Positions 7,685-35,178 of a DNA stretch of 64,000 nt are shown one piece after another. The translations under genes were made by a program, and so were the position numbers. The stretch is taken from the IMG/VR virus record IMGVR_UViG_3300042391_001376, positions 140,905 through 204,904 of that record; one strand, 5' to 3'. The first letter of the stretch is position 1; each line of letters starts with the position of its first letter. The notes below the pieces were generated by a model. It worked only from the letters and a program-made list of their open reading frames with translations, had not been told where the DNA came from and ran no database searches.

Positions 7685-7783
7685 TTTGTGCTCCGTTCAT
7701 GTTTTAAAAATTAAGATTCTATATATTAATATAATATATTATTATATATATACATATTATTTATAACATATATGTATATAGTA

Positions 7784-7804
7784 AGGGGGTAGGGGGTAGG
7801 GGGT
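7784..7804 (+). repeat. three tandem AGGGGGT repeats next to a ~70-bp almost pure A/T tract
   Basis: AGGGGGT x3 at 7784-7804, preceded by a TA-rich run at ~7715-7780. Confidence 0.85.
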
Positions 7805-16481: not shown

Positions 16482-19157
16482 ATGGAAACACCACAACAAA
16501 AGCTCAATCGTTTAACGACAGAGCCTCAACAGAAAGGAGCAGAAGTGATTGCATTCATGCATGACTTCTTCCATACCATCACCAACGACCCAACAGAGCG
16601 TGAGTCATTGGCCTATTCAACCGTAAAGAAGACGGGCAAACCATTCAAGATGGGGACAACAGTTCGCACTGGTGAGAATGGTGCATACAACCACCATATC
16701 TGGCTTATGCCAATCAACAACAACCCTACTTGGAAGTATGGACTCTTGGAGCACAAGCTTAACAGCCGCGGTAAGAAGTTCAAGCTTAAGATGATCACAA
16801 TCAATGAGCTGAAGCAGTGGATCAGCAAGGACAACGGAGACTTAGATGCACTCATCAAAGAATCCAACTTTGCTTGGGCTAATGCAACACATGCTTTCTT
16901 CTTGAAGATGCGTGAAGACAACAACTGGTCATTGGATGATCTTGGTGTCAGCGTAATCGACATGAAGAAGACATCAAAGCGACTTCAAGAAATCACACGG
17001 TTTACTCAGGTATATCGTTCAAGGTCAATGAAGTCAGTCACCACTAAGGCTTATACGAACGAATGGCTTGAGCAATACTACTCTAGCTATGGATTGAAGT
17101 ATGATCCAGCAGATGAGGTGATGTTCGATGGACCAGCCTTCATGCGCAAATCAGCATTCATCAAAGCTTGTTTCCCTATCAAAGATGCGGAAGTAAGAGG
17201 CAAGATGATTGGTGGTGTACACGGTGACAATCGCACTTGGTTGTTCCGTATGAAAATGGAAGGCTGCATGCTTAAGGGCTTGTTGCACATTGTTGAGGAT
17301 GATGAAATCCCAGCAGACATTGTGTACCATGAATCAATGGAAAAGAAGGAATTGTCCACAACAGATGGTAATTATACATTTGTAGCGTGGCCGATGCCAA
17401 CTCTGTACGAAGTAACGATTGACGATCAATCAATGATCAATAATCCATGGTTGTACACCACTGAACACCTCAAAACTACATGCGACAGTCTTTTGTCTGA
17501 CTTCAAGAAAGAAATCGAAGTGGGCAATATGCCAGAATGGATGACTGTTAGCATGGATGACCAAGAGGATCATGGAGTAGTCAACGAAGACAATGAACTC
17601 CAAGAGTGGCAAGCAAACTACATCAAGTGGCAAAAGGCTGGGTTCTCATTGTATGACAGCTCAAACTTTATTCACATGGCGTACGGTCAGCTTGCTAATC
17701 GCATGAGTGCATCAGTTAAGCGTGGTAACATCTGGTTGCCAATGTTTAACGCATTCATGGCTCCTGTCATTACTCATGAGGCATTGCAAATCATGGGTGG
17801 ACAAGAACTGCCAGAGTCAAAGTCAAATGTTGTATGGTATGACAAGCGCTTCGGTGCAATCATCCCAGGCAACCGCTTTGTTGAGACAGCAGATCTTCAC
17901 GACACATGGGACCAAGATGGTGACATGGCCAGGTTCATCCGCATTAAGTTGTGGAGCTCTTCGCCAGTTGTAACTCTCTATGGGTTGTCACACCAGGAAT
18001 TCAGGGATGGATTTGTTATCCCAGCTGACCTGGAAGTACCAACCACACCAGAAGAAGCAATCGACATGGTTGTCATCATTCGTTCACCAAACGGACCTGG
18101 TGGTTATTCAATCGAGCGTTACGATGCAGAGACAATGCCATTTATGCGTGTAAACGAGGACATGGTACAGGTAATTGACCTTAGCAAAGCAACATTGCCG
18201 ATGAGCACACTGCTTAAAGACACTATTGTTGACACTAAGCTCAATGAAATCCTGAACTCAACACAGTACACCAAGAGGGGATTCACACGGGATAACGCCA
18301 AGGACATGATTGATGCACAACTGCACAACCCTGGGTTTGGTTCATTCTCAAACTTCATGATGGTGCATGCAAGTGTGTTCGGTCCAAGCTACCCAACCTA
18401 CATGCCAGCTAGTGGTAATGACATTATCGATGCAAGCTCTCAGACAGCAAACATTGAGGCATTCCGCTTTATCAGTGGCAGCGTATCAACCATGTGGCAA
18501 TCATTGATCGATGATATGGTCAAACAAGATATCAAGATTGACAGCTACATGATGAGTCGTATCCCTGATCGGTTCAAGCATGAGTTGGAAGGTAATGTCT
18601 ATGATGGACCATTGGCAGAGCTCAGTGAGCACTACATCAAGGTACTCAAGGATGTACGCGAAGAGAAGAAGAACACCATCTATCTCCGCATGCGTTCTGA
18701 GTTAATTCCTCAACTGCAACAGTTAATCCCTACACTGTCAGATCAAACACAGGCTGTCTGTGAAGCATTCAACACCAAGTATATCCACATGTTGCGTGCA
18801 TTTGACGAGCGTAAGGCAGAAGCTAAGGCAGAAGAGACAAAGTGGTCAAGCCGCTACTTCAAGGCATGGAACGCTGTGTATTCTTCAACCGAGTTGGAAG
18901 CCATTGTCAAGATGATGGTCGATGAGATTGAAACGTCCAAGTCACCAACCAAGATGGCTGTTGCTATCTATCGCTGGATGACTGATCCAAAGATGAGCTA
19001 CGAGAGGGTGTATCACGAAGGTCGTGGCGAATACATCAAGGCCAATGCTCATCTGCGTTATGGTCTAGTTGACCGTGTAATGTTCCAAGCCGGCAAGCGT
19101 GGGCAGAAATCAATGATGGATCTGCTTATCCAGGGGCTCAAGGATCTGGGCCTCTAG
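16482..19157 (+). CDS. putative single-subunit two-barrel RNA polymerase, YonO/eukaryotic RdRP-like (paralog 1)
   Basis: KTSKRL, FDG, R...LKG, SMEK, DQDGD (17910-17924), IIRSP, FGSFSN; start set by GGAGGT RBS. Confidence 0.75.
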   Translation: METPQQKLNRLTTEPQQKGAEVIAFMHDFFHTITNDPTERESLAYSTVKKTGKPFKMGTTVRTGENGAYNHHIWLMPINNNPTWKYGLLEHKLNSRGKKFKLKMITINELKQWISKDNGDLDALIKESNFAWANATHAFFLKMREDNNWSLDDLGVSVIDMKKTSKRLQEITRFTQVYRSRSMKSVTTKAYTNEWLEQYYSSYGLKYDPADEVMFDGPAFMRKSAFIKACFPIKDAEVRGKMIGGVHGDNRTWLFRMKMEGCMLKGLLHIVEDDEIPADIVYHESMEKKELSTTDGNYTFVAWPMPTLYEVTIDDQSMINNPWLYTTEHLKTTCDSLLSDFKKEIEVGNMPEWMTVSMDDQEDHGVVNEDNELQEWQANYIKWQKAGFSLYDSSNFIHMAYGQLANRMSASVKRGNIWLPMFNAFMAPVITHEALQIMGGQELPESKSNVVWYDKRFGAIIPGNRFVETADLHDTWDQDGDMARFIRIKLWSSSPVVTLYGLSHQEFRDGFVIPADLEVPTTPEEAIDMVVIIRSPNGPGGYSIERYDAETMPFMRVNEDMVQVIDLSKATLPMSTLLKDTIVDTKLNEILNSTQYTKRGFTRDNAKDMIDAQLHNPGFGSFSNFMMVHASVFGPSYPTYMPASGNDIIDASSQTANIEAFRFISGSVSTMWQSLIDDMVKQDIKIDSYMMSRIPDRFKHELEGNVYDGPLAELSEHYIKVLKDVREEKKNTIYLRMRSELIPQLQQLIPTLSDQTQAVCEAFNTKYIHMLRAFDERKAEAKAEETKWSSRYFKAWNAVYSSTELEAIVKMMVDEIETSKSPTKMAVAIYRWMTDPKMSYERVYHEGRGEYIKANAHLRYGLVDRVMFQAGKRGQKSMMDLLIQGLKDLGL

Positions 19158-19293
19158 GATAAGTATTATCTTAATGTTATATTCTAAACAAGCACCGTGC
19201 TCTGCCTAGTCCCCAAGACTTGGTTCCACTTTGATTCTAAACACGGTTCAAGAGATTTTCCGCGGTCTGGCCCCCATCACGGGTCTGGCCGTT

Positions 19294-19304
19294 GAATAAG
19301 TCGG
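19294..19304 (+). promoter_or_regulatory. GAATAAGTCGG motif copy 1 (candidate phage RNAP promoter)
   Basis: repeated six times in 19.3-28.9 kb, all on the + strand. Confidence 0.55.
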
Positions 19305-19386
19305 GGTCTTTCGGGACTTCGCCTACTGGTAACATCGGGTTGCTGGTAGTTTATGTGACTACGGTCACAGAAAGGGGTTGGGTCTA

Positions 19387-19914
19387 ATGACTCTTCTCAT
19401 CACTAAGGTTGGTGCACCTACAACGCACACACATAACTTGAAGGACGGCTCAGGCTCGTTCAGCAAGACCGAAATTCCTGTAACCCTACAGGCTAAGTTC
19501 GGTGAGGAAGCAGGCTTTCAGATTGGTGTGAACTACACTGTCTGGATGGACGCTGCTCGTGCAAGCAAAGTCGTCGCGATTGCTCAGGCATTCATTGATG
19601 GCACAGCCACTGACAGTAACGGTGAACTGTATCACCCAAGTTGCCGTCTTGCTGTACTCAACGACAGCGAGTGCTTTACTGCGGGCGAACTGCGGACGAA
19701 AGACTTGACCAACAAGTTTGGTGGCACATACACTGTGACCAACCAGACCATTTGGTTGAAGGACGACACGGCTTTGACTTATGACATTGCCGAGTTGGCT
19801 GTTTCCCCTCAGCGTGGCAATATCGATGACCTCGATATCCTCGTTGACTTCCGTGGTGCTGGTTTGGTTGCGCCAGTTGTTACATCCACTGCTACTGCTG
19901 AAGTGCCTTTCTGA
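19387..19914 (+). CDS. hypothetical protein ending in ATAEVPF (SSB-tail-like)
   Basis: ATG after GAAAGGGG; codon usage typical of high expression; followed by a terminator. Confidence 0.75.
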   Translation: MTLLITKVGAPTTHTHNLKDGSGSFSKTEIPVTLQAKFGEEAGFQIGVNYTVWMDAARASKVVAIAQAFIDGTATDSNGELYHPSCRLAVLNDSECFTAGELRTKDLTNKFGGTYTVTNQTIWLKDDTALTYDIAELAVSPQRGNIDDLDILVDFRGAGLVAPVVTSTATAEVPF

Positions 19915-19935
19915 CACTTTAGTTTTAGCCCGTTT

Positions 19936-19990
19936 TGTCAGTCAGGTCGGTATGCCCCCCCGCATATCGGCTTGACTGACATTTTTTTTT
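19936..19990 (+). terminator. intrinsic terminator
   Basis: 20-bp stem TGTCAGTCAGGTCGGTATGC/GCATATCGGCTTGACTGACA plus T9. Confidence 0.9.
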
Positions 19991-20036
19991 GCAACTAGTT
20001 CCCTAATCTTTTTTTTGTTCCTAGTGTCCTAATCCT

Positions 20037-20050
20037 TAGGAATAAGTCGG
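20037..20050 (+). promoter_or_regulatory. TAGGAATAAGTCGG motif copy 2
   Basis: intergenic, just after a terminator and before an RBS. Confidence 0.6.
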
Positions 20051-20250
20051 AGAAAAGGAGAATAGCATGAGTGAACCTTACATTTGCGGAACAGCAGCAC
20101 CTGATCCTTGCGAATTTGAAAGCGTAGAGCATCATGACGCTACTTGTCAAGAATGTCTATCTTGGTTTCCAACATGGACAGCGGCTCAACAAGCAGCTAA
20201 AGCAGCAAGAGATCTGTGTAAATAATCATAGGACACATATAAAAGCCTAT

Positions 20251-20402
20251 GTACTGGTAGCCTGTAAACCAATGGATGTCGAATCAGGCTGAGTAGTCAA
20301 CACTTATATATACATACGGTCGTTCTACCGATGTAAAGTTGATAATGAACAGTCGAGTTACAGCGACTTTTAAACATTTAGGGTAACCTAGGCCACTGGT
20401 AC
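20251..20402 (+). ncRNA. candidate multibranch structured RNA, possibly related to copies A/B
   Basis: closing stem GTACTGGT/ACTGGTAC; AGCCTG/CAGGCT; stem-TAAA-ATGAAC-stem-TAAAC. Confidence 0.4.
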
Positions 20403-20490
20403 AAGGGCGACATTATTGTACTGTCTGACATATGCAGGAATAGCGTTGTATCAATATGTTATATTATTCATCTCAATTGAAAGGATTGTT

Positions 20491-20769
20491 ATGGGAATTC
20501 AAGATGACTCATTTGATGTTAATCTTATTGCGACCAAAGAAGGTCTAATAAAGATTAGCCAGATGACTTTGCTAGAAACGGTCAAGGAAATGAACCGCCG
20601 TACAGACTCATTGCTTGAGATCTGTGAATCACACCAAATACTTATTGAGCAGTTGTCCGATAAAGTTATTTCTTTACAGGACGCACTTGATAATCTCAAG
20701 CCTTGCCAATGCTGTGGAAACAACCCATGCCTCGAATCACTCGATGCAACTAAACATGGAGACTACTAA
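20491..20769 (+). CDS. hypothetical coiled-coil protein
   Basis: AAGGA RBS before the ATG at 20491. Confidence 0.6.
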   Translation: MGIQDDSFDVNLIATKEGLIKISQMTLLETVKEMNRRTDSLLEICESHQILIEQLSDKVISLQDALDNLKPCQCCGNNPCLESLDATKHGDY

Positions 20770-21011
20770 TGGATCTCATCTTACCTTTAGGCATTCTAAT
20801 CCTCATATCAGCAGTCTTCGTTCGCGGGATTGTGCGATATGTTGCCGGCAACCCATGGAAGTTACATCGTTGCATGAACCACCAGTTCTACTTTGAAGAA
20901 ATAGATTGTCGTGGAATATATTGTGGCGTATGTCACAAGGACATAGACATTGAGTATTATTCTAAAGGAATAAGTCGGGAGGGAATAACCCATGAAAATA
21001 CAAATGATTGA
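20769..21011 (+). CDS. membrane-anchored hypothetical protein
   Basis: hydrophobic N-terminus, CxxH/CxxC. Confidence 0.6.
   Translation: MDLILPLGILILISAVFVRGIVRYVAGNPWKLHRCMNHQFYFEEIDCRGIYCGVCHKDIDIEYYSKGISREGITHENTND
20966..20978 (+). promoter_or_regulatory. AGGAATAAGTCGG motif copy 3
   Basis: exact core repeat. Confidence 0.55.
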
Positions 21012-21179
21012 TGACATACCACGCAAAGGTTTGTGTGCCATATGTCACAAGACCAAACTCACAGTAACAGTATCAATCAAATCCAAAGGAAGTCCTATAA
21101 TCACCACTGAAGATTGGTGCTTAGAAGATTTCCACACACTACAAGATAAAACACTCACACTACACTGAAAGGTAGAACC

Positions 21180-21473
21180 ATGATATCAAAATATGAAACA
21201 AAAGATGAAAACTGGGAATCCTATGGTTTTCTTAATGTACTAACCGAATATCACACACGCCCTCAAGGTATGATCAGTTCAATGCGAGCTGAAAAATACA
21301 ACGATGGTAATGTTCATATTGAATTCAACATTCAAAGCCCAAGTGGTACACCAGATTCATCTGACTTCCTAACCTACACTATGCTAGAAATCAATTCATT
21401 TGAACGCGCTAAAGCTATTGTAGATATGTATGCAACCATGTTAGACTCTTACATTCTAAAGATGTCAGCATGA
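21180..21473 (+). CDS. hypothetical protein
   Basis: 97 aa, AAGG RBS. Confidence 0.65.
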   Translation: MISKYETKDENWESYGFLNVLTEYHTRPQGMISSMRAEKYNDGNVHIEFNIQSPSGTPDSSDFLTYTMLEINSFERAKAIVDMYATMLDSYILKMSA

Positions 21474-21668
21474 AAACATTCGGACTAATCTCAATATCAT
21501 TTGCTGCGGGTAGCATCTCAATGATGATGTGGATTCGCAAAATATTCAATAAAACAATGAAAGGAACCTTGTGAAAAAACTTGCAATCATCACTACAACA
21601 ATAGCATTCGTTATTGCCGGCTTAGCATTATACATCAAAAAGATGACATTGTTCAAAGGAGAATAAAC

Positions 21669-21902
21669 ATGAAGCATAAAATACTACTAACATTTGCAAT
21701 TCTTACTTTAGCTATTCCAGTTTCTACTGCAAACGCTAAAGGTGGAGGAAGTCATTGTGTAAAAATATTTAATCAATCAACTAAAATTTGGGGCTGGAAT
21801 TGTGAAGGTAAACCTAAATTCTTTATATGTGGTAAAGCCTACAGATGCATGTCATTACCACCAGGAACTAAAATTTACGCTACAGGCCAAATTTACCCTT
21901 AA
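21669..21902 (+). CDS. small secreted Cys-containing protein
   Basis: signal peptide ending ANA, AAGGAG RBS. Confidence 0.65.
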   Translation: MKHKILLTFAILTLAIPVSTANAKGGGSHCVKIFNQSTKIWGWNCEGKPKFFICGKAYRCMSLPPGTKIYATGQIYP

Positions 21903-21915
21903 AAGGAGAATAAGC

Positions 21916-22182
21916 ATGAACTATAAGAAACTATTCTGGGGCTACATGGCATTTAGTGCTATCACTGGCTTCTTTATTGGCATTGTGCGCGGCATTGAGC
22001 AAGAAAAGATCAAGCGTCGCTTACGCAATAACCCATTGTCTGCCAGTAAAGCATTTCAAGAAGTGTACGGACACTACAACAATGATGACCTAGACTTTCC
22101 TGAATGGGTCAACACTGATGAAGACGCTAGATTCAATAGCATTGTAGGCCGTCTAAACCATCCAACGAACCGACAGAAGTAG
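21916..22182 (+). CDS. membrane-anchored hypothetical protein
   Basis: AAGGAG RBS, N-terminal TM helix. Confidence 0.65.
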   Translation: MNYKKLFWGYMAFSAITGFFIGIVRGIEQEKIKRRLRNNPLSASKAFQEVYGHYNNDDLDFPEWVNTDEDARFNSIVGRLNHPTNRQK

Positions 22183-22193
22183 GAATAAGTCGG
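22180..22193 (+). promoter_or_regulatory. TAGGAATAAGTCGG motif copy 4
   Basis: exact repeat at a gene end. Confidence 0.6.
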
Positions 22194-22287
22194 GATATTT
22201 TCGGAGGGGGGTGACCGTTGTTTGATTGGCTATTCGATATTATCCAAGATATATTAGATTCAATATTCAACTAAGGAGAAAAACATT

Positions 22288-22467
22288 ATGTTAGGTAAAT
22301 TTCTAGGCAAAGTTACTGGCAAATCAGTGGAAGTAGTTACTGCTACGCCAGATTTTCTAAAGACGAACACTAAAGCGACTATGGAAGCACTCAAGAGTGC
22401 AAAAGATGGATTCGTAACTGATTTCAAGGCTGAATACAACAAGCCTGAAGTAACTAACGAGGACTAA
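22288..22467 (+). CDS. small hypothetical protein (59 aa)
   Basis: AAGGAG RBS, manually translated MLGKFLGKVTG... Confidence 0.6.
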   Translation: MLGKFLGKVTGKSVEVVTATPDFLKTNTKATMEALKSAKDGFVTDFKAEYNKPEVTNED

Positions 22468-22546
22468 TACAAAGATTTGGGCTAGTCCCAAAATAAGCAA
22501 TAAACACATATCATATCCACATAATAAACACATAAGGAATAAACAC

Positions 22547-23590
22547 ATGTCATTACTCGAAAAATTCGGTTACAAGAAAGACGAGTTCGCAATCGCTTTG
22601 GAAAACCCAGAGTTGTTTGCATCAAACTCAACTACCACTAAAATTACTGTTGGTACACCAGCCAAGATTGCTGGTTCTATCAATGGCGTTGCTGTTCCAA
22701 CCACCATTCTAGTAAAGAATGCTAACTGGAGCCGTCTCACCGTGCGTGACCATGTTATCCGTCGTCAGGACGCAGAGCCACGCATCAGCCAAGTATTCGG
22801 TGGTGTATTCAATAACTTCCAAGCAGACATCACGCTTGAAGTTGATGGTACTGAAATGTCATTGTATGAACTCATGAAGCAGTTCTGCATCGAATCGTTC
22901 GGTACATCCCTTACAGATGACCAAGTAAACAAGATGTTGGAGAGCAACCTTTCGCTCAACGGCATTCGTAACGGTGGCCCTCTGATGTTCCAGCAAATGG
23001 GTGCAAATCCTGCTGGTATCGCACACGCAGTAGAAGCGTTCCGTACAGCTGGAGCAATTGACGATATGAAGTCTGTTGCATCAAGCAAATCATTCAATAC
23101 AGCTTATAAGATTCCTGGCGATGGTGCTGGTCTTGAAGTTGTATCGTTTGAACTTGGTACATCTGACCGTTCACTCTCAAAGACAGGACAAGGCTTCATT
23201 GACATCGTCAGTGCAGTGACTGAGAACTTTGAGCGTGTAAAGAATCACAAGTCTGTTGCTAAAGTATTGCAGGACAAGTTGAACGCAAGCATCGGTTCAA
23301 TGAGCCAAGAAGCAATCAAGAAAGCACAGGCAGAAATCAAGATTGAACTTGACATGGCTAAAGACTATGCTAACTGCTGGTCTGGTGCTGCTCGTCAAAC
23401 CAAGATTGACAATGGTCGCAAGATCGTTGAGAACAAGTACAATGCAGTAAACGCCCCATGTGGTCGTTGGTCTGCAGTAGTTGCTGGTCAAACCATCGAC
23501 TTTGATGTATGGTCAAACTCGACAAAAGCACCAGTACAAACCGCAGAACAGCAGATCAGCGATATCGCAACCGCTGAGGTACCGTTCTAA
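22547..23590 (+). CDS. hypothetical protein ending in ATAEVPF (SSB-tail-like)
   Basis: 347 aa, AAGGA RBS, followed by a hairpin. Confidence 0.8.
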   Translation: MSLLEKFGYKKDEFAIALENPELFASNSTTTKITVGTPAKIAGSINGVAVPTTILVKNANWSRLTVRDHVIRRQDAEPRISQVFGGVFNNFQADITLEVDGTEMSLYELMKQFCIESFGTSLTDDQVNKMLESNLSLNGIRNGGPLMFQQMGANPAGIAHAVEAFRTAGAIDDMKSVASSKSFNTAYKIPGDGAGLEVVSFELGTSDRSLSKTGQGFIDIVSAVTENFERVKNHKSVAKVLQDKLNASIGSMSQEAIKKAQAEIKIELDMAKDYANCWSGAARQTKIDNGRKIVENKYNAVNAPCGRWSAVVAGQTIDFDVWSNSTKAPVQTAEQQISDIATAEVPF

Positions 23591-23602
23591 GGTTATCTAA
23601 AT

Positions 23603-23652
23603 TTGGTGGGGTTGGCCTGACTGATCGCGGGTCAACCCTACTAATAAACTTT
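23603..23652 (+). terminator. probable terminator or stabilising hairpin
   Basis: TTGGTGGGGTTGGCCTG/CGGGTCAACCCTACTAA stem. Confidence 0.6.
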
Positions 23653-23760
23653 TAGTGGGTAGTAAGTGTGCACATTCCCGATGAATGCTGCGAACCAACC
23701 ATTTGCTACCCACTATTTAAGTATAATAAAAAAAATTTTATTAACTCAAAAAGGATTAAC

Positions 23761-24024
23761 ATGAGCACCCCACTTGAAATGCTAAATATCCAGCGTTGGA
23801 TGAAGGACGCCGCATGCAAAGGAAACACTGAAGGTGACTGGTTCCCAGAACAACCAGGCAGGACCCCAGCTATCAAAATAGCAATAGACATCTGTAAGCA
23901 ATGCGCGGTAAAACAAGAATGCTATGATTATGCTATAAACCGCCCAGAACTACAAGGCATCTGGGGTGGAGTAACAGCACGCAAACGTGGGAACCTACGA
24001 TCCAAAGGAAAGAAAAGTGAATGA
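23761..24024 (+). CDS. whiB: WhiB-family Fe-S transcription factor
   Basis: W...AACKG...WFP...CxxCxVxxxC...GIWGG. Confidence 0.92.
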   Translation: MSTPLEMLNIQRWMKDAACKGNTEGDWFPEQPGRTPAIKIAIDICKQCAVKQECYDYAINRPELQGIWGGVTARKRGNLRSKGKKSE

Positions 24025-24394
24025 ATACCCAACAAATTATCCTAAGCATGGCTTTCACATGTGTCATGGGTGCGGGTCTATGGCTCCGCATCATACTCAA
24101 GAAAACTTTCCAGATAATGGATGGGCATTTAATCTCAATCACTTCGGATACTATGCCGGCTTCACAGATCCAATCGGAGAACCAGAACAACTAGTCAGAC
24201 TATGTCACGACTGCGTAATAAAGTTCCTAGACGCCTTCCCACTACTCAGTGTACTAGTAGGCAAAGGATGCCACAGCCAATCAGGCCCCAATGAAAAACC
24301 ATGCTGTCAATATGCATGGAAAGCAGAATGGATAGGCAACAGTGCCATAACCTATTTAGCTTCAGAAGATGGCCAACAATGGATCATCCAATAA
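24017..24394 (+). CDS. Cys/His-rich hypothetical protein
   Basis: GTG start after AAGGA; CHGC, GYYAGFTD, LCHDC. Confidence 0.65.
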   Translation: MNEYPTNYPKHGFHMCHGCGSMAPHHTQENFPDNGWAFNLNHFGYYAGFTDPIGEPEQLVRLCHDCVIKFLDAFPLLSVLVGKGCHSQSGPNEKPCCQYAWKAEWIGNSAITYLASEDGQQWIIQ

Positions 24395-24556
24395 CACTCT
24401 CTATTACTCCCTATATAACAATACTACTCCCCAAACCTTTTTTCTTGGGGGGCCGAGCGAAGCGAGGCCTCCCTTACCCTAGTAGACTTCCGCAAGGAAG
24501 CTCATAAAAAAATTCGAGGTAGTCCTCAGACCGCCGAGAAAAAAAGAGTACAGATG

Positions 24557-24586
24557 TTGCAAGTGAGTACACGAGACTGCTATACT
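24557..24586 (+). promoter_or_regulatory. sigma-70-type promoter with extended -10
   Basis: TTGCAA-N18-TATACT with TG. Confidence 0.65.
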
Positions 24587-24623
24587 GATATCCTAGGAAA
24601 TAAACACTAAAAGGAGATTATGT

Positions 24624-24839
24624 ATGCCTCGGCAGCATCAATCTAAAGCTGTTCGGAAAGTTCTTGCAGAACTAACCAGACTAGGCTTTAACGTTGAACA
24701 AAAGAAATCAGGTGTCTATCGGATCACTCCACCCCCAGGGGTAGATGGTCCACTGTATACGACACATGGCACGGAATCAGCATTGCATCCGATGCGCCGT
24801 GACTTTAAAAAATATTATAACATAGATATCAACGTTTAA
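24624..24839 (+). CDS. HicA-like small RNA-binding/toxin-fold protein
   Basis: helix-GF-strand-KKSG-strand...T.HGT pattern; family is inference. Confidence 0.5.
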   Translation: MPRQHQSKAVRKVLAELTRLGFNVEQKKSGVYRITPPPGVDGPLYTTHGTESALHPMRRDFKKYYNIDINV

Positions 24840-25186
24840 AGTGTTTGCTTCCATGGGAGAGCTCATCTCGTATCTCTACTAGGTGGTGGTAGCTATACTT
24901 GGGTGGGTGGGCTCTCCCGCCCCCCTACACTATAAGTATTAAATTAAGTTTAATAATAAGATTAAGCTTACACTACCTCTACCACACACACACAAAACCT
25001 AGACCCAACCCAACAAAAATGTTAGACAAACCAATAAATGGAACCCTCTCGCCCCAGCACCCATTATAACTTATATAACTCAGTATAAATCGATATAAAC
25101 ATATAGATACACATGTGTACACACATCTATTCCGTATACAGTACACTTGTGTACACAATAAAGAATTCTCCCTCTGAATTCTGATA

Positions 25187-25200
25187 TAGGAATAAGACAG
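25187..25200 (+). promoter_or_regulatory. TAGGAATAAGACAG motif copy 5
   Basis: variant of the repeated motif, intergenic. Confidence 0.45.
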
Positions 25201-25277
25201 ATCAACAATGCCTAGTCCGTATAGGATAGTATTAGAATAGTATTAGAATAAACAATGTATCGTGAAAGGATACTTAT

Positions 25278-25709
25278 ATGCTCTTTATGATGATGATATG
25301 GTTAGCTGTAGCTTCTACCGTAGTAGAAATGATGTTCGCGGCAAGGATCCCAGCCTGGCGTAAGAACGCACACAAATACAAATGGGTTAACATGGCACTA
25401 TCCTTACTCTTATCATTCGTCCTAGGTGTAATGTTCGGTGCAGCCGGACTAATCGCCTTAGGTGCAGCCATGATATCCACCGTCCTATCCATCCCAGGCT
25501 ATGCTATCCTACACTGGAATTATGATTCCAAGGAAGCACAAAAGCATGGTGGCAATATGACGCATTACCTTCGCGGCAAATGGATACAAGCATTCAAAGA
25601 CCTAGCAAAGGTTATTTACGGAATTATTAGAATAATCACATTCCCCATCTGGGCAACCAGAGCAGTAATAAATAAACTTAACTCAGTCAAACAACGTAGG
25701 ACGGCATAG
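25278..25709 (+). CDS. integral membrane protein
   Basis: several hydrophobic helices. Confidence 0.75.
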   Translation: MLFMMMIWLAVASTVVEMMFAARIPAWRKNAHKYKWVNMALSLLLSFVLGVMFGAAGLIALGAAMISTVLSIPGYAILHWNYDSKEAQKHGGNMTHYLRGKWIQAFKDLAKVIYGIIRIITFPIWATRAVINKLNSVKQRRTA

Positions 25710-25768
25710 ACATCCTGTCAGCGAAAGCAATATAACAAAAAATTACAAAAAAATTTCGCGCCGAACGG

Positions 25769-25841
25769 GCCTTGGTAGCTCAGGGGATAGAGCAACGGAC
25801 TTCTAATCCGCAGGTCGTAGGTTCAATTCCTACCCAAGGCG
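25769..25841 (+). tRNA. tRNA-Arg(TCT)
   Basis: GCCTTGG/CCAAGGC acceptor, CT-TCT-AA loop, GGTTCAATTCC. Confidence 0.95.
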
Positions 25842-25886
25842 CCCACTCAAAATCAAAGAAGTGACAACCAAAGCAAAGGACATGTA

Positions 25887-26252
25887 ATGGCCAAATACTC
25901 TATGACATGGGAAGACCACTACTTTATCTTCTACAAGATGAACCGCAACAGAACCATAACTTCTGTCGGTACACCAAAGGAAATAACCCTTTGTAATAAC
26001 AAATACAACGAAGCATTCTACGGCGTTCGAGCCGGCAAATACGGTATTTTTATACCGTCAGACGCAGAACGCTGGGGAGTCTTCAGTTTTATCAATAACA
26101 TATGGACACCACAATTTGGTGACCTTATACCTAAAGAATATGAACGCCAACTGTACACTCTGGACCAAGGACGCTTTGCGCTCCTCAGAAGAAGTACAGT
26201 GAATATTAATTTCTCAATAACCACCAAAACAAACACAAAGGCTAAATCATGA
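25887..26252 (+). CDS. hypothetical protein
   Basis: 121 aa, AAGGA RBS. Confidence 0.65.
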   Translation: MAKYSMTWEDHYFIFYKMNRNRTITSVGTPKEITLCNNKYNEAFYGVRAGKYGIFIPSDAERWGVFSFINNIWTPQFGDLIPKEYERQLYTLDQGRFALLRRSTVNINFSITTKTNTKAKS

Positions 26253-26893
26253 GTACCGTCCGAATCAACCTCCCAAATGACATCACTATTGAAGCAACAC
26301 CCGACCAAGCAGTTGCTATCCTAGCCAAGCTGTCTACCCCTAACGCAGAGACTGAAGATCAGCGTATTAACAGAATTAAAGCTCAGAATGCGGCAATTAA
26401 GCCTAAGCTTGAAGCCGAACTAAAAGAGCTTGAAGCCAAGATTGTCAAAGACAAGAAGGCTCCAGCTAATAAAACAATCATTGCTGACCTTCCAGTATCA
26501 TCACAAATCAGTCGTCCACAGCGTGAAGTATTGGACTCAATATTCTTCTACGCCCCAAGCAGAACAAAGTCTAAAGGCAAAGCAGCTTATGTGGCGGCCA
26601 TCTTAATGGATCGCGAAATACACAGCATGCAAGAGCTTAAGCGTCTTTCTAATGCGCCAACAAGCACCGTCACATTTGCTATACGCCGTCTACGCGAAGC
26701 TGGTAGCACCGTTGAAGTTAGCTCGCAAGTAATGAGTAAGAATACTTTAGTACAGCTTACTCGTCTTGCTAAACCTAAGTTTAAAGTTAACAGAACACTT
26801 ACGCGTACTAAAACAAAGACACAGAATTCCTCTGCGTCAGCAAAGAATTCACCAATCATAATCCCTAAAGGATTCACAGAACTAACCGTGTAA
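26249..26893 (+). CDS. basic protein with probable winged-helix domain
   Basis: HSMQELKRLS...TVTFAIRRLREAG. Confidence 0.6.
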   Translation: MSTVRINLPNDITIEATPDQAVAILAKLSTPNAETEDQRINRIKAQNAAIKPKLEAELKELEAKIVKDKKAPANKTIIADLPVSSQISRPQREVLDSIFFYAPSRTKSKGKAAYVAAILMDREIHSMQELKRLSNAPTSTVTFAIRRLREAGSTVEVSSQVMSKNTLVQLTRLAKPKFKVNRTLTRTKTKTQNSSASAKNSPIIIPKGFTELTV

Positions 26894-26906
26894 ACGGTTA
26901 ACAAGT

Positions 26907-27029
26907 TGTCAGTACTGGGCTATGTAATCAAGGTTGTTCATGGTCTGATTGCACAGGGTCCCTTTCAACTTAAACTTCCTGAGAGTTTAAGTCCGCTCCG
27001 CTTCCCCAGGCGTGAGCCCCAGTCTGGCA
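26907..27029 (+). ncRNA. candidate four-way-junction structured RNA
   Basis: closing TGTCAG.ACTGGG/CCCAGTCTGGCA with three internal hairpins. Confidence 0.45.
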
Positions 27030-27047
27030 TTTATTTAAAGGAATATT

Positions 27048-27509
27048 ATGACCATAACACAAACAGAAATACCAGCACATATAGAGCAATTACTTGATGT
27101 ACACAATACATTATGGGATGCTCTCTCAGACTCCTATGCCGGTTTAAAATTAGACTATAAAGGCAGTAAGTATGATATATATAAGCCAGAACATAATGGC
27201 TTTACATCTACTGTTCTATCTAATGACAACGGCAAAAACTTTTTGTGGATTACACAAAATTTAAACAAGTCATCTTACGGTTCATTCGAAATTAAAAGAG
27301 CTCGCTCTCAAGGAGACGATAAACGTATCACTTGGATAGTTGATAACAGCAATGATAAATTTTATTATTGCGCTCTTATTAAAACTTGTGTTTATTTTGA
27401 TGGCAAAAAAGATATTCTTGTCGAAAGATATATCAACGATAACACAGAAGTTGTTTATTGTACCAATCCAACTTATGCAAGTTACGTTACACACAAATCA
27501 AAATATTAA
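27048..27509 (+). CDS. hypothetical protein
   Basis: 153 aa, AAGGA RBS. Confidence 0.7.
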   Translation: MTITQTEIPAHIEQLLDVHNTLWDALSDSYAGLKLDYKGSKYDIYKPEHNGFTSTVLSNDNGKNFLWITQNLNKSSYGSFEIKRARSQGDDKRITWIVDNSNDKFYYCALIKTCVYFDGKKDILVERYINDNTEVVYCTNPTYASYVTHKSKY

Positions 27510-27584
27510 CTCAAAAATGTTGGACACCTTAATTTATACACCTTAGGTGTTCACGCATACATTATATATATATTTCTTGTAATG

Positions 27585-27613
27585 TTGCATTCTAATAAAT
27601 TAAGTGTTATACT
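27585..27613 (+). promoter_or_regulatory. sigma-70-type promoter with extended -10
   Basis: TTGCAT-N17-TATACT with TG. Confidence 0.65.
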
Positions 27614-27699
27614 ATATTTCTAGTAAAAATAAGATATTATTTATATACCTATATATACCTTTCATAACTCAAATTAACTCACATTAAGGACATATTATC

Positions 27700-27903
27700 A
27701 TGGCTAAGCCTTCAAAAACACCCCTCATTCAAGAATTCATTTCAATGAATAATGGAAAGACATTTTCCACAAAAGAGATGTGCAAAGAAATCGGAGTAAG
27801 TCTTCCTACTCTTCTTGCATTCATCAAAAACAATCCAGACACCTTTAGCTCAATGAGCTATGGCGTCTACAAGATCGAAGTAAACATACAGGCTACATAC
27901 TAA
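27700..27903 (+). CDS. small HTH DNA-binding protein
   Basis: FSTKEMCKEIGVSLPTL. Confidence 0.7.
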   Translation: MAKPSKTPLIQEFISMNNGKTFSTKEMCKEIGVSLPTLLAFIKNNPDTFSSMSYGVYKIEVNIQATY

Positions 27904-28040
27904 AACATATATACAAATAAAGAATGAAACTTAACTTTTATTCTTTATACAGGTACTATTCATCTATCGTTAATAAACGATAGCGCAGGTAAGTTAACAC
28001 TTACCCATCCCCTAAACAAGGATATGTATTGAATAGATAC

Positions 28041-28069
28041 TTGTTACACCACCATATATGTGATAGAAT
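28041..28069 (+). promoter_or_regulatory. sigma-70-type promoter
   Basis: TTGTTA-N17-TAGAAT with TG. Confidence 0.55.
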
Positions 28070-28075
28070 AATACC

Positions 28076-28171
28076 AATGCCCGTAACCAGCGGGCAGGGG
28101 AATAATCCCTAACGTAACAGAGAAATACTGTGAAGTCGGAGATGGCTAACCTTGCCACTGTGACGGGCATT
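28076..28171 (+). ncRNA. candidate structured leader/sRNA upstream of the lytic transglycosylase
   Basis: long closing stem AATGCCCGT...ACGGGCATT with internal hairpins, starting at the predicted TSS. Confidence 0.5.
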
Positions 28172-28269
28172 TCGTATATGTCCGCACATCTTCGGTTTCG
28201 CAACCTGCGCCGTACTAATGGTTTCCATTTCGGAAATCAGACAAAGACGAAAAGGAGCGAACACGGAAT

Positions 28270-28866
28270 ATGCAGAATAAATATAACAAATCAATTATAG
28301 GTGTTATAGCTATATTTTTAGCTTTAACAACTGGAGCCAATGCGCTACTTGCGCAAAAAGTTCCTGACATGGAACCTCCCAGTACCCCTTGGGTACTTAG
28401 ACACATTCCCGACATAATTGAAAGTAAAACAGCACAAGAACCAATTGCCTTTAAACATGGTGATGTATCATGGTTGGCAGACCTAGCTATTAAAGTAGGC
28501 TGGCCCAAGAAAACAATACCTCGCTTAGAGCACATTGTTCTTCGCGAATCAGGCGGTTGTCCTAACCGCATTGGTGGATCCATAGTTGATAAGAACTGTA
28601 ATATTATTGGACACACAGGTGCTACCAATAAATCCGACTCAGGATTATTACAGATCAACGGTGTTAACTGGGATCCTAAAAGACCAGGAACACAAATTGC
28701 TTGTGCTCGACTTAGGATATGTACACAGGAAGCTATATTAGATCCTGTCAACAATCTTAAAGTGGGACTTCTTCTTTATGAAGAAGCTGGTTGGGGACCT
28801 TGGGACCCATGTCAGTGGGGCCCAGAGTACGCAAGCAGATGCAAAACAATGCCTAAAATGCCTTGA
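28270..28866 (+). CDS. secreted lytic transglycosylase (SLT/lysozyme-like)
   Basis: signal peptide; RESGG catalytic Glu, DSGLLQIN, DPVNNL, GWGPW. Confidence 0.88.
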   Translation: MQNKYNKSIIGVIAIFLALTTGANALLAQKVPDMEPPSTPWVLRHIPDIIESKTAQEPIAFKHGDVSWLADLAIKVGWPKKTIPRLEHIVLRESGGCPNRIGGSIVDKNCNIIGHTGATNKSDSGLLQINGVNWDPKRPGTQIACARLRICTQEAILDPVNNLKVGLLLYEEAGWGPWDPCQWGPEYASRCKTMPKMP

Positions 28867-28888
28867 TGATAATAATCATTTAGGTTTA

Positions 28889-28902
28889 TAGGAATAAGAC
28901 GG
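28889..28902 (+). promoter_or_regulatory. TAGGAATAAGACGG motif copy 6
   Basis: intergenic, upstream of polymerase paralog 2. Confidence 0.55.
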
Positions 28903-28925
28903 GGGGCCGAAAGGCCCCCCTTTTT
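28901..28925 (+). terminator. GC hairpin with GAAA loop and T-run
   Basis: GGGGGGCC-GAAA-GGCCCCCC-TTTTT. Confidence 0.75.
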
Positions 28926-28992
28926 AGTTAACCCAAAAAACATCTTTTTTTGCTAATTCAAAAGTATAGCAAAAACTTAAACTGAAAGGTAC

Positions 28993-31626
28993 ATGAACAT
29001 GCCAATATATCAGCCTGCCGTCCGTTTACAAACAATGCACAACGGACCATTGCGAAGCATTAACGATTATCAATTTGGATTCTATGATGTCGGCTTCGGT
29101 CGGCAAGCTCTTCAATATCTTCACGAAGTAGAAGGTCTTGAAAATCCAATATTTAGAATGGCTACTATGCCAATTCCTTCCAATAAGATTGAAGCAAAGA
29201 TTGCAGAAGCATACATCCGTAATCCTAACATCTGCTATTCAATAGTAGATAAAAATAAGATCGTATTAGTACATATCAACGGCAACGATGGTTGGCTTGA
29301 TGTATACAAGAAACTTGGTTATGAAATCCTTAGTGGCGACAAGACAGCTAAGCGACTCAAAACCTTCCACCGTGCAGCATTGTTAAATGCTCACTTCACT
29401 AAAGATGAAATCAATGTCCAGATCGTAGATCCAGATGAATATTCATCTTGGTCATTTGAAGATCCATCCTTTCAAGAATGGGCTACAAAAGAATACCCTA
29501 ATATCGACGTTACAGATCCTAAGGTCATCGAGCGTTTGCTTGATGGCGGTTTCGTAATCTCTCGTAAGTTTATTCAGCGTGCAGCTGAAAACTTACCAGT
29601 ATACGAACCACACAAAACTTTAGATACTAAAGAATATTATTACGACTGGCGTGTTCGTAAGAACTTTATTAAAGATATGATGGAATGCTCTATATTCAAT
29701 ACTCGTATTGTATTCGAAGAGGGTTTCCTCAAGGGCAATGCCATCGTATCTGACAACATGCCAGAAGGTGTAGATATTATCACTACACGCACAAATATAA
29801 AGAACGAAATCAAGTATCACAATGGCTTTCAGTTTCTAGCTGAGCCAGTGGGATCGTATGATTCTGTTCTTACTGACACCCAAACTGTTATTAATCTTCC
29901 TAAACTATTCCCTAACGCTGATCTAGAGTATTGGCTTGACGAAGAATACAAAAAGATCTTTGATCTTGCTGTATCCGACAAGCTACTCACTAACTGGCGT
30001 GCAGTTTACAAGCGTCAGTTCCGCAAAATCCACGAAGCAGAAGACGAAGAAGCATATGCCCGCATGAACTATGTGGGCTATCGTTGGCGTAAGCTTGGCA
30101 TGAAAATCACTGATTCACCATGGTTGTTTGAAACCTTGGCGATCAGTCATGCCCGACCATTTGCCGATTCATCTAAGCCTCGTATACCAGTTCCATGCGC
30201 AATAAGTGAACAGGTTATTCCTGAGTCACTTTCTCGTATGGCTGGCTATGACATCGAAGTAGACCAAGGCAAGATACGACGTATCGAAGAACTTGGTGTA
30301 CACGTAGTTAGTGACCTTGACTGGCTAGAAATGTATGAGAGCCATGGCGGTCACGACGAGGACGACTACTTCAAGCTGTTCTATCGCACCATGCGTGGTG
30401 GCGAATACGACGGCAAGAAGGTAGTTATCATCTGCCGTTCACCCAATGACCTTGGTGAGTATTCAATCTTTGAATACACCGAAGGTGATTGGTCTCCAGT
30501 ATGGCACAACGCTGCTGGTATCCCAACAGAATTTCCAGAAATAAGCGGACGTGACTGGCCAAAGCGTTTAAGTAAAGCTATCTTTGATGGCGACATTACT
30601 TATTCAGGTTTGCCATCTAAATCACTACCTAAAACTAAGCCTGAACAGGCACCCTATACACCTGACGACGTCATTCGAGATATGAATATCGCAATGGCTG
30701 GCGGTCAAATCGGTGGATATGTAAATGCTTGCATGCTTTATTCTTCGGTGATTCACCGTCACCGTCCAATTCAATTGTGCACTTTAGAGACTGCTCTCGA
30801 CAAATGCATTAACCCAGATTCTATAGAAGATGTTATAGCAATTGACAACGAAGCTAAAGCTATTGTTCGTCAAGTTATCGAAAGCAAAACCCCAATCGAT
30901 CAATTCGTTTGGAGTACTCGTGGTTCAGCCCGTTTACTTGAAGAAGATGATGATCTTCTGATAGATGAAAACGGCAAGCTAACCATGATGTCTAAATTAT
31001 GCTATGATAAATTTGCAGAACACACTGCTCGCGTTCGTGAATGGGCACAAAATAATGCCCGTCCATCCGATCCACGCATAGCAGAATTGGGCAATAGCCA
31101 ATTGCAAATGTTCTATCATGCACTACCAATTGTCAACCAGTTCCGCTCAGGCATATGGTCAATTAATACATCTGAAGCAACAGCTGAAAATGGATCTATT
31201 GTACGCAACTCTTGGGAATATTTATATTCCAAACAAGTTGACATCATCAATTCATTTGAACTTGAATCTGATCGTCACGACTTCGTACTTGCACTATATT
31301 CTGTCTGTCTTAATGTGCCAACCAAAGGTGGCAAAATTACAGACCATTATATGATGAACAGATTTGTTTATCCATATCTAGAATCCGCTTTGCAGTATTA
31401 TGGTTTGGGCAAATCTGTCAACTTCCTGATGCAAGAAGATGGTGATGTTAAGATTCTCGAAACATTAGTTACCGAATGGAAGTTTACCGATCCTGAAGGC
31501 AACTCAACTTTATTCAATGATCCAATTGAATTTCAACAAGCTCAGTCTGTTTATTCTAAAGTTCAATTTGTTACAAATTCTGCTTCGTTACTTTCTTCGG
31601 AAGTACGAACTACTTCAAAGTATTAA
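28993..31626 (+). CDS. putative YonO/RdRP-like two-barrel RNA polymerase (paralog 2, variant DEDD loop)
   Basis: KTAKRL, LDGGFVIS, R...FLKG, NIK, RIPVP, GGHDEDDYF (acidic loop 30355-30366), ICRSP, IGGYVN; colinear with 16482..19157. Confidence 0.7.
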   Translation: MNMPIYQPAVRLQTMHNGPLRSINDYQFGFYDVGFGRQALQYLHEVEGLENPIFRMATMPIPSNKIEAKIAEAYIRNPNICYSIVDKNKIVLVHINGNDGWLDVYKKLGYEILSGDKTAKRLKTFHRAALLNAHFTKDEINVQIVDPDEYSSWSFEDPSFQEWATKEYPNIDVTDPKVIERLLDGGFVISRKFIQRAAENLPVYEPHKTLDTKEYYYDWRVRKNFIKDMMECSIFNTRIVFEEGFLKGNAIVSDNMPEGVDIITTRTNIKNEIKYHNGFQFLAEPVGSYDSVLTDTQTVINLPKLFPNADLEYWLDEEYKKIFDLAVSDKLLTNWRAVYKRQFRKIHEAEDEEAYARMNYVGYRWRKLGMKITDSPWLFETLAISHARPFADSSKPRIPVPCAISEQVIPESLSRMAGYDIEVDQGKIRRIEELGVHVVSDLDWLEMYESHGGHDEDDYFKLFYRTMRGGEYDGKKVVIICRSPNDLGEYSIFEYTEGDWSPVWHNAAGIPTEFPEISGRDWPKRLSKAIFDGDITYSGLPSKSLPKTKPEQAPYTPDDVIRDMNIAMAGGQIGGYVNACMLYSSVIHRHRPIQLCTLETALDKCINPDSIEDVIAIDNEAKAIVRQVIESKTPIDQFVWSTRGSARLLEEDDDLLIDENGKLTMMSKLCYDKFAEHTARVREWAQNNARPSDPRIAELGNSQLQMFYHALPIVNQFRSGIWSINTSEATAENGSIVRNSWEYLYSKQVDIINSFELESDRHDFVLALYSVCLNVPTKGGKITDHYMMNRFVYPYLESALQYYGLGKSVNFLMQEDGDVKILETLVTEWKFTDPEGNSTLFNDPIEFQQAQSVYSKVQFVTNSASLLSSEVRTTSKY

Positions 31627-35072: not shown

Positions 35073-35158
35073 GCCCAGGTGGCGGAACCGGTAGACGCAA
35101 GGGGCTTAAACCCCCTCGATTAGAAATGATCGTACGGGTTCGATCCCCGTCTTGGGCA
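35073..35158 (+). tRNA. tRNA-Leu(TAA)
   Basis: GCCCAGG/CTTGGGC, AGGGG-CTTAAAC-CCCCT, long variable arm. Confidence 0.95.
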
Positions 35159-35178
35159 CAAAAGAACAAAGGAACTCT

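Follow-up and report, generated by a model that had tools for sequence, protein, structure and literature searches.

Two paralogous two-barrel RNA-polymerase-like proteins with an unusual order of catalytic motifs, and a possibly rewired barrel, in a freshwater jumbo phage

Introduction

Two-barrel RNA polymerases (RNAPs) are the universal enzymes of transcription, and their few divergent viral branches (SPbeta YonO, crAss-like phage gp66, and gp64 and gp96 of Thermus phage P23-45) are informative on the minimal catalytic core and on how it evolved. The signature '[RK]xPx{20,100}DxDxD', in which the R/K-x-P motif precedes the Asp motif, has been described for all two-barrel RNAPs (PMC10770324). 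The present analysis concerns two open reading frames (ORFs), encoding proteins of 891 and 877 amino acids (aa), termed P1 and P2, respectively. They are located in a 64-kb stretch of phage DNA (hereafter, the window), which constitutes the last 64 kb of the 204,904-base IMG/VR record IMGVR_UViG_3300042391_001376, rated 97% complete. Both proteins are predicted to be of the two-barrel RNAP type, and in both of them the Asp motif comes before R-S-P.

Among the described systems, the eukaryotic RNA-dependent RNA polymerase (RdRP) QDE-1 and the plant enzyme RDR2 (PF05183) provide the best structural matches to both copies, over ∼570-610 residues that extend from the N-terminal domain through the two barrels into the helical C-terminal part. 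Like P1 and P2, they are single chains, and they contain a similar series of motifs (a K..KR helix, DG, R....KG, D.Q..N, the Asp motif, R-S-P and a G...N helix). In contrast, they show no sequence-profile match to P1/P2, and they carry DYDGD, versus DxDD in most members of the present family; P1 and P2 are viral, and match neither an RRM nor a head domain. Moreover, the R-S-P of QDE-1 precedes the Asp motif: in a structure-based alignment, the catalytic barrel is divided into two halves, of which the first ends with 'ARSPAH-FP' and the second contains the Asp motif (PMC10770324).

The Thermus phage enzymes, i.e., the non-virion proteins P23-45 gp64 and P74-26 gp62 and the virion protein gp96, are likewise two-barrel RNAPs of phages that consist of a single chain and have hardly any sequence signal; their structural Z scores with both models are 8-10. 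They also occur as two diverged paralogues per phage, and those of P23-45 derive from one old duplication and serve different gene classes (PMC10770324). They differ, however, in their canonical [RK]xP...DxDxD order, which was the search filter of that study. In addition, gp64 is smaller (∼590 aa) and gp96 is fused to the tape measure and packaged, whereas P1 and P2 are fused to no virion protein and are encoded in a non-structural block. More generally, the structural- or late-module placement or virion fusion of phage virion RNAPs (of the N4, crAss gp66 or P23-45 gp96 type) is not seen for P1 and P2. SPbeta YonO, a single-chain phage enzyme of ∼840 aa from the RdRP-like branch, also contains R-S-P (LRSPHLF), but at residue 492, before DNDGD at residue 535, and its hhalign probability with P1/P2 is below 1%. 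The gp66 protein of crAss-like phage phi14:2 has the two-barrel fold and matches P1 weakly (Z 5.4 over 479 residues), but is a virion protein of ∼2,180 aa with the canonical motif order. Finally, the multisubunit beta/beta-prime enzymes are similar in placing the Asp loop on one barrel and the basic residues on the other. They differ in that the barrels are on separate subunits, RAPTLH (residue 425 in E. coli beta-prime) precedes DFDGD (residue 460), the local structural match is weak, and no Pfam Rpb1/Rpb2 signal is evident in the phage genome.

Results and Discussion

Paralogy of the two ORFs

The positions of both genes and of their conserved elements are collected in Table 1. The 891-aa reading of P1 begins at the ATG at 16482, 8 nt after GGGGAGG, and an alternative 913-aa reading from 16416 is possible; in other samples an 891-aa protein, 99% identical to P1, was called. 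The gene overlaps the ORF preceding it.

In a BLASTP comparison, P1 and P2 exhibited 22% identity over 298 aa (E 7e-6). The profiles of their respective families were matched by hhalign with a probability of 99.7% (E 2.7e-25, 532 columns), and the paralogy is therefore real, far beyond chance. The original prediction, which was made by a model from the sequence alone, had described the two ORFs as paralogues, and this proved correct; both ORFs are present at the stated coordinates, on the plus strand. All of the motif pairs it listed fall into aligned hhalign columns and were re-translated at their own coordinates; the aligned pairs include KTSKR/KTAKR, FDG/LDG, LKG, DxQ..IN, HDTWDQDGD/HGGHDEDD, RSPN/RSPN and GSFSN/GGYVN. 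The sequence comparison thus supports the view that P1 and P2 are ancient paralogues, which would have arisen from an old duplication.

Close relatives of P1 (P0002-P0012, up to 94% identical) are ∼1,110-1,130 aa in length, with an N-terminal extension of ∼225 aa that is missing from P1; one of them (P0011) carries PF08719 (NADAR/DUF1768). It was therefore considered whether P1 and the 267-aa ORF upstream of it (window 15634-16437) are two parts of one fused gene, of which P1 would be the 3' part. This was rejected, since the N-terminal extension of the relatives is unrelated to that ORF.

Library searches and predicted fold

No model in Pfam, PHROGs or NCBIfam matched P1 or P2, tblastn detected no relatives in 50,697 isolated phage genomes, and a literature search found no paper describing the family. 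Profile searches of PDB sequences, using either the whole families or the catalytic region alone, produced chance matches only. The Pfam RdRP model (PF05183) failed to match P1 or P2 at E ≤ 0.1, or any protein of the genome at E ≤ 1. With YonO as a single sequence the hhalign probability was 0.3%, and with an alignment of 18 YonO sequences 0.2%; the one aligned stretch, which placed the YonO RSPH on a helix-initial 'DSPW' of P2, was dismissed as noise. Since there is no sequence-profile link to Pfam RdRP, YonO or any PDB chain, the link to polymerases rests on predicted structure.

The AlphaFold2 (AF2) models were of good quality, with a predicted local distance difference test (pLDDT) score of 85 and a predicted template modelling (pTM) score of 0.81 for P1, and values of 91 and 0.89, respectively, for P2. 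A Foldseek search of the PDB with the P1 model gave seven significant matches, which comprised QDE-1 (E 1.5e-6), maize and Arabidopsis RDR2, and P74-26 gp62/P23-45 gp64. In VIA comparisons, which are independent of Foldseek, P1 matched RDR2 (Z 11.6), QDE-1 (9.7), gp62 (9.5) and P23-45 gp96 (8.2), with crAss gp66 lower, as mentioned above. The corresponding matches of P2 were maize RDR2 (Z 13.3), QDE-1 (10.5; 608 residues, 4.9 Å) and gp64 (10.0). For both models, the chains above Z 8 were two-barrel RNAPs only (RDR2, QDE-1, gp62/gp64 and gp96); for P2, the next unrelated chain had a Z of 2.8 and all other chains were below Z 3. Among AlphaFold DB clusters, P2 matched ∼20 eukaryotic RdRPs. The matches in BFVD were three phage proteins, two of them uncharacterised and the third named 'RNA dependent RNA polymerase'. 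In a protein-language-model feature search, RdRP (PF05183) clusters accounted for 76 of the 100 named matches (score 0.84), which serves as a lead only.

A two-barrel RNAP fold of the QDE-1/RDR2/P23-45 type is thus predicted with high confidence for both P1 and P2. The comparison with QDE-1 and the P23-45 enzymes had been proposed together with the original prediction, and two-barrel RNAPs are indeed the significant solved matches. Of the 'YonO/RdRP-like' assignment itself, the RdRP-like fold was retained, but kinship with YonO at the sequence level was not, as the hhalign comparison was not significant.

Catalytic motifs and their order

The Asp motif was predicted to precede R-S-P in both copies, and this order was found in all 310 full-length members of the family, where the gap between the two motifs ranges from 0 to 63 aa (median 23). 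The motif of P2, however, is DxDD rather than the DxDGD claimed for both; DxDD occurs in 252 of the 310 members and DxDGD in 58. In YonO, in the beta-prime subunit of E. coli and in the aligned row of QDE-1, the canonical order, namely [RK]xP followed by the Asp motif, was confirmed. Neither P1 nor P2 matches the '[RK]xPx{20,100}DxDxD' signature. P1 contains the DxDxD portion, as DQDGD, while the DxDD of P2 has three invariant aspartates in a different spacing. As judged from the sequences, the motif order of P1 and P2 is unlike that of any described family, all of which have [RK]xP before DxDxD.

Is the catalytic barrel rewired?

In the canonical double-psi barrel, strands 1 and 2 are followed by a helix, strands 3, 4 and 5, a second helix and strand 6. 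The R-x-P motif ends the first of the three inter-helix strands, and strands 2 and 3 lie on either side of the strand that follows the Asp loop. The P2 model, as assigned by DSSP, contains strands at 399-400 and 403-410, a helix at 411-416, a loop, strands at 427-431 and 436-439, a helix at 441-450, the Asp motif, and strands at 459-468, 476-482 and 491-495. The order of elements is common to both AF2 models: a short strand, a strand, a helix, a 10-residue strandless loop, a tight two-strand hairpin and a helix, and then the Asp motif with a long strand, a strand ending in R-S-P, an 8-residue turn and a further strand. The R-S-P strand follows the Asp strand at a distance of 7 residues in P2 and ∼35 in P1. 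Between the barrel helices there are consequently two strands in both models, versus the canonical three, and two extra strands follow the Asp strand. Generic double-psi barrels could be aligned to the first barrel of P2 only, and not to the second. Residues 345-497 of a beta-prime chain align weakly to 398-533 of the P2 model (Z 2.8).

Pseudo-likelihood couplings were calculated from 309 sequences (effective number ∼207). Antiparallel couplings connect the Asp strand with the strand before the first helix (402/466, 405/461 and 407/459), and with the R-S-P strand (464/476, 462/480 and 461/483), and the coupling 452/489 joins the HGG loop to the turn after RSPN. The Asp strand couples to four partners, two of them beyond these ladders, so that the order of neighbouring strands is ambiguous. 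Considered together with the double-psi topology, the couplings point to the R-S-P strand as the apparent occupant of the strand-3 slot, though with a different connection. The element order and the couplings would suggest the relocation of a single strand, abolishing one psi crossover, and not a circular permutation. The 'permuted double-psi barrel' of the original prediction is therefore plausible solely in the form of a local strand relocation, to which both lines of evidence point. That the catalytic barrel is rewired is at present a tentative proposal, for which the chances appear close to even.

Alternatively, the barrel may not be rearranged at all: RSPNGxGE would then represent a hairpin that follows the catalytic barrel, equivalent to the SPANGEP of beta-prime, and a recognisable strand-3 R-x-P would have been lost. 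The two segments are alike in composition (S-P-x-x-G-E) and in position, since SPANGEP begins 28 aa after DFDGD in E. coli beta-prime and S483 of P2 is 25 aa after D458 (the family median gap being 23 aa), and the long-spacer clade has room for an intervening helix. On the other hand, beta-prime has Leu at the position of the invariant Arg of the family, and the R-S-P of QDE-1 (ARSPAHFP) and YonO (LRSPHLF), situated on the canonical strand before the Asp motif, is the closer match. Such a reading also conflicts with the models, in which there are two inter-helix strands instead of three and no strand in the loop 417-426, and in which the RSP strand of P2 follows the Asp strand by 7 residues. 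The two strands are also coupled in an antiparallel ladder, and the RSP strand would thus be at the site of strand 3 in a double-psi barrel. An unrearranged barrel is therefore considered unlikely, although it deserves serious attention. On a more far-reaching interpretation, the chances of which are somewhat less than even, P1 and P2 represent a large, undescribed family of single-chain two-barrel RNAPs with a rewired catalytic barrel: the R-S-P strand, bearing the NTP-contacting Arg, would come after the Asp strand in a simple hairpin, at the cost of one of the two psi crossovers, and DxDD would replace DxDxD as the metal site.

The first barrel and conserved residues

The first barrel was identified by the alignment of residues 130-285 of the P2 model to generic double-psi barrels (the Cdc48/p97 N domain and FwdD). 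At E ≤ 0.001, a joint profile of both paralogue families detected 503 clusters (50% identity), of which 199 remained at E ≤ 1e-30. Residue conservation was computed over 150 representatives of the 503 clusters, and is given in P2 numbering. The invariant residues are K120, D184, G185, D455, D457, D458, R482, P484 and D603. Those that are nearly invariant are K117, R121, R127, R238, K247, G248, K270, Q297, G488, G574, N578, D636 and D784, which include three basic residues of the first barrel (R238, K247 and K270).

The KTSKR/KTAKR helix is probably a duplex-binding helix, and its placement with respect to the barrels agrees with the arrangement reported in PMC10770324. The GSFSN/GGYVN helix is a candidate bridge helix on the basis of its position. 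Collectively, the basic helix, the basic residues of the first barrel, the Asp triad of the second and the conserved helix that follows form the pattern that would be expected of an active two-barrel enzyme.

The superfamily

In a FastTree phylogeny, P1 and P2 belong to separate deep clades. P2 falls within a 'short-spacer' DxDD clade, while the P1 family forms a monophyletic DxDGD subclade (support 100), embedded in a 'long-spacer' clade whose other members have DxDD. This makes the DQDGD of P1, canonical as it looks, a secondary form, with DxDD as the ground state of the family.

Some of the distant members (P0233, P0239, P0252 and P0308; loci L060-L062) have N-terminal fusions to a PIF1-type helicase or to DUF4326, and the PIF1 fusion is located among small phage-like ORFs. 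Another distant member, P0263 (locus L063), ends a run of ∼20 small ORFs of early type, a WhiB-like gene among them; gene 1 of T7 is likewise found at the end of such a run. The WhiB-like neighbour hints at actinobacterial hosts for the P0263 lineage. The family as a whole is common in lake phages, and is named by no library that was searched.

Proposed role in transcription

P1 and P2 are probably, though by no means certainly, single-chain two-barrel nucleotide polymerases, and most likely both are DNA-dependent RNAPs that transcribe the phage's own genes. In the proposed mechanism, the active site of each chain would be built between its two barrels. The first barrel would supply the basic residues R238, K247 and K270, and the second the three aspartates for Mg2+ (DxDD in P2, DxDGD in P1). 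R482 of R-S-P would be placed on the neighbouring strand, where the canonical Arg reads the NTP ribose. Transcription of the phage, presumably from a DNA template, could then proceed without the host enzyme, and the two copies, which related phages keep side by side, would probably serve different gene classes or promoters. P1 and P2 are thus most likely two stage-specific phage transcriptases.

Several observations favour this proposal, besides the paralogy, the predicted fold, the invariant residues, the separate deep clades and co-occurrence of the two copies, the place of a distant relative at the end of an early-type run, and the precedent of P23-45. In the 97%-complete genome, models of Rpb1, Rpb2, RdRP and T7-type RNAPs match nothing, although the T7-type model was also silent in all of the control genomes and its result is therefore uninformative. 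The number of sigma-70-like sites around the P1 and P2 genes (53) equals that expected in shuffled sequence (53.1). Of the 19 differences listed within P2 for a related strain, 18 affect third codon positions, which indicates that P2 is under purifying selection. As regards transcription units, a strong terminator-like hairpin and a 73-nt gap are located upstream of P2 (Table 1), and P2 therefore probably has its own promoter and opens its own transcription unit.

The heptamer TTACTAT, followed by A or T, occurs in 16 of the 50 intergenic gaps of the minus-strand structural block, often 36-44 nt before the start codon, and in 54 copies genome-wide, on both strands. It is the sole intergenic motif found to recur, and a candidate phage-specific late promoter element, tied to neither enzyme. 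In the divergent intergenic region at window ∼7760-7790 (minus strand), CCCCCTA CCCCCTA CCCCC is directly upstream of a TTACTATATAC site. An exact k-mer search for promoters was discarded, its sole product being a coding tandem repeat. Upstream of P2, window 28098-28152 contained 2-base deletions (at 28121 or 28123) and loose contig ends in two DNA runs, and is a variable spot in the population.

A number of points weigh against this assignment. The DxDD motif departs from the canonical DxDxD, and the family lacks a canonical [RK]xP in front of it. As noted above, sequence profiles connect the family neither to Pfam RdRP, nor to YonO, nor to any PDB chain. The PIF1 helicase fusions of P0233 and P0239 hint at work on single-stranded DNA. 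A promoter for P1 or P2 was sought by k-mers and intergenic enrichment, but none could be tied to either enzyme, and the plus-strand block revealed nothing clear. Finally, the RNA evidence comes from one metatranscriptome that possibly contains DNA, and amounts to three contigs close to the start of P2, each 151-186 nt in length, which is too little for a transcript call.

It is conceivable, but improbable, that one or both enzymes act instead on single-stranded DNA or RNA, in the priming of replication or in RNA synthesis as in QDE-1. Their closest solved folds (QDE-1 and RDR2) are templated by RNA or single-stranded DNA, the PIF1-type fusions point in the same direction, and Pfam models of DnaG, Toprim and Prim-Pol match nothing in the genome, despite the presence of a DnaB-like helicase and a DnaE-like polymerase. 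However, YonO, gp64, gp96 and crAss gp66, which share the fold class, are DNA-dependent transcriptases (PMC5467207, PMC10770324), and no other RNAP was detected in the phage. Moreover, a 400-aa protein encoded beside the replication genes has weak PriS/PrimPol matches; a divergent primase of archaeo-eukaryotic type is therefore probably present, and a priming role for P1 or P2 was downgraded.

Even less plausible is the suggestion that P2 and the DxDD majority are catalytically dead and act as structural or regulatory paralogues, for which the departure of DxDD from the DxDxD of every characterised two-barrel polymerase might be cited. Dead enzymes usually lose their catalytic residues, whereas here 150 representatives that share less than 20-30% identity all retain the three aspartates, R482, P484 and the first-barrel basic residues. 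In addition, P2 is under purifying selection and is better conserved than P1 in related phages.

Two copies per phage

The co-occurrence of the two copies was surveyed in 15 related IMG/VR records of 169-268 kb; most of the other superfamily members are on contigs too short for judging copy number. Two matching loci on the same strand were found in eight of the records; in seven of these they are ∼10-15 kb apart, and in the eighth (G015) ∼190 kb. A strong P2-type match was observed in all of the related records, while the second copy was often much weaker. Six records, one of them rated 100% complete, had only a P2-type copy at the sensitivity of the search. In the 267,766-base record G008 (L030/L040), two P2-like matches were ∼207 kb apart (from 1.5 kb and 210 kb), and a match of P1 type was not detected; the second match is probably due to an assembly concatemer, rather than to a second gene copy.

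Although the two copies co-occur in eight of the 15 records, and in multisubunit enzymes the two barrels are divided over two chains, an obligate heterodimer, as entertained in the original prediction, is unsupported and highly improbable, because both barrels and every invariant residue are kept in each copy, neither of which resembles half of an enzyme, six records have a single detectable copy, and the solved single-chain relatives are monomeric in solution (PMC10770324 supplement).

Genomic setting

The same DNA was found in 19 lake and freshwater metagenome runs, at 75-100% of the sampled words, and the phage is therefore a recurrent freshwater jumbo phage. The genes up to ∼7.7 kb of the window are on the minus strand, and those from 8.2 kb onwards on the plus strand. 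The minus-strand genes, together with the upstream 140 kb, encode tail-fibre-like and virion proteins and giant proteins of 1,435-3,471 aa, as well as a DnaE-type DNA polymerase, ribonucleotide reductase, ThyX and a DnaB-like helicase. The plus-strand block encodes RecA, an SF2 helicase, AAA+ proteins and a subtilase; its remaining ORFs are numerous, and most of them match nothing in Pfam or PHROGs. The genes for P1 and P2 both lie within this non-structural block, among the RecA, helicase and AAA genes, while the structural genes are on the minus strand. A fusion to a virion domain was seen in neither P1 nor P2.

Outside the window, at genome positions 108,700-109,620, a 72-bp tandem repeat of at least 7 copies is contained within a 715-aa minus-strand protein, which matches only PHROGs of unknown function.

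Table 1. Positions of the P1 and P2 genes, their predicted functional elements and other features. Coordinates refer to the window unless indicated otherwise.
Feature	Coordinates	Strand	Remarks
P1, 891 aa, two-barrel RNAP-like, 'long-spacer' clade	16482..19157	+	ORF, AF2 model
P1 KTSKR (K163-R167), basic helix before first barrel	16968..16982	+	K163, K166 and R167 invariant in both families; helix 164-172
P1 predicted catalytic barrel region, residues 417-548	17730..18125	+	Element order as in P2; ∼30-aa insert between Asp and RSPN strands
P1 HDTWDQDGD (DxDGD)	17898..17924	+	Derived form of DxDD; nested monophyletic subclade
P1 RSPN (R534-N537)	18081..18092	+	Alignment, re-translation
P1 GSFSN (G620, N624), candidate bridge helix	18339..18353	+	Invariant in both families; helix 620-633, after catalytic barrel
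P2, 877 aa, two-barrel RNAP-like, 'short-spacer' DxDD clade	28993..31626	+	ORF, AF2 model
P2 KTAKR (K117-R121), same element as P1 KTSKR	29341..29355	+	K120 invariant, K117/R121 nearly invariant; helix 118-126
P2 predicted first barrel (DPBB-B equivalent), residues 130-285	29380..29847	+	Carries D184-G185, R238, K247-G248 and K270
P2 predicted catalytic barrel region (DPBB-A equivalent), residues 399-498	30184..30483	+	DSSP, pLDDT ∼97
P2 HGGHDEDD, predicted metal-binding Asp triad D455/D457/D458 (DxDD)	30343..30366	+	All three Asp invariant in 150 representatives
P2 RSPN (R482-N485), C-terminal end of strand after Asp strand	30436..30447	+	R482 and P484 invariant
P2 GGYVN (G574, N578), candidate bridge helix	30712..30726	+	Nearly invariant; helix 573-587
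Terminator-like hairpin, 20-bp stem and T run	19936..19981	+	Closes unit of P1 and next small ORF
Terminator-like hairpin, 8 G-C pairs, GAAA loop, TTTTT	28901..28920	+	73 nt before P2 start; reads on both strands
TTACTAT sites	7784, 6260	-	Many more upstream in genome
TTACTAT sites	12208, 62320, 63412	+	
ClpB/Cdc48-type AAA protein	6269-7684	-	
RecA	8262-9248	+	
SF2 (ResIII) helicase	32652-34331	+	
Subtilase	35152-36618	+	
Protein with weak JAB-domain match	46364-48103	+	
AAA+ ATPase	49223-50827	+	
400-aa protein beside DnaE-like polymerase, near DnaB-like helicase	Genome 24462-25664 (L003:4462-5664), outside window	-	NCBIfam PriS, PrimPol E ∼4e-5, far below curated cut-offs

Significance

On the strength of the predicted structures, the P1/P2 family is best filed within the two-barrel RNAP superfamily, as a variant. 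It provides the sole candidate RNAP of a 205-kb phage, and departs from the core signature in two respects, i.e., the motif order and DxDD. The phage would be the second natural case, after P23-45, in which two deeply diverged copies are kept, and both proteins are compact (∼880 aa), confidently modelled targets for structural work. If the enzymes are active, a wider definition would be available for finding two-barrel polymerases. If the barrel is indeed rewired, then the most conserved enzyme core in biology would be invariant neither in its connectivity nor in its signature, and screens based on '[RK]xP...DxDxD' would have overlooked a whole branch of phage transcription enzymes.

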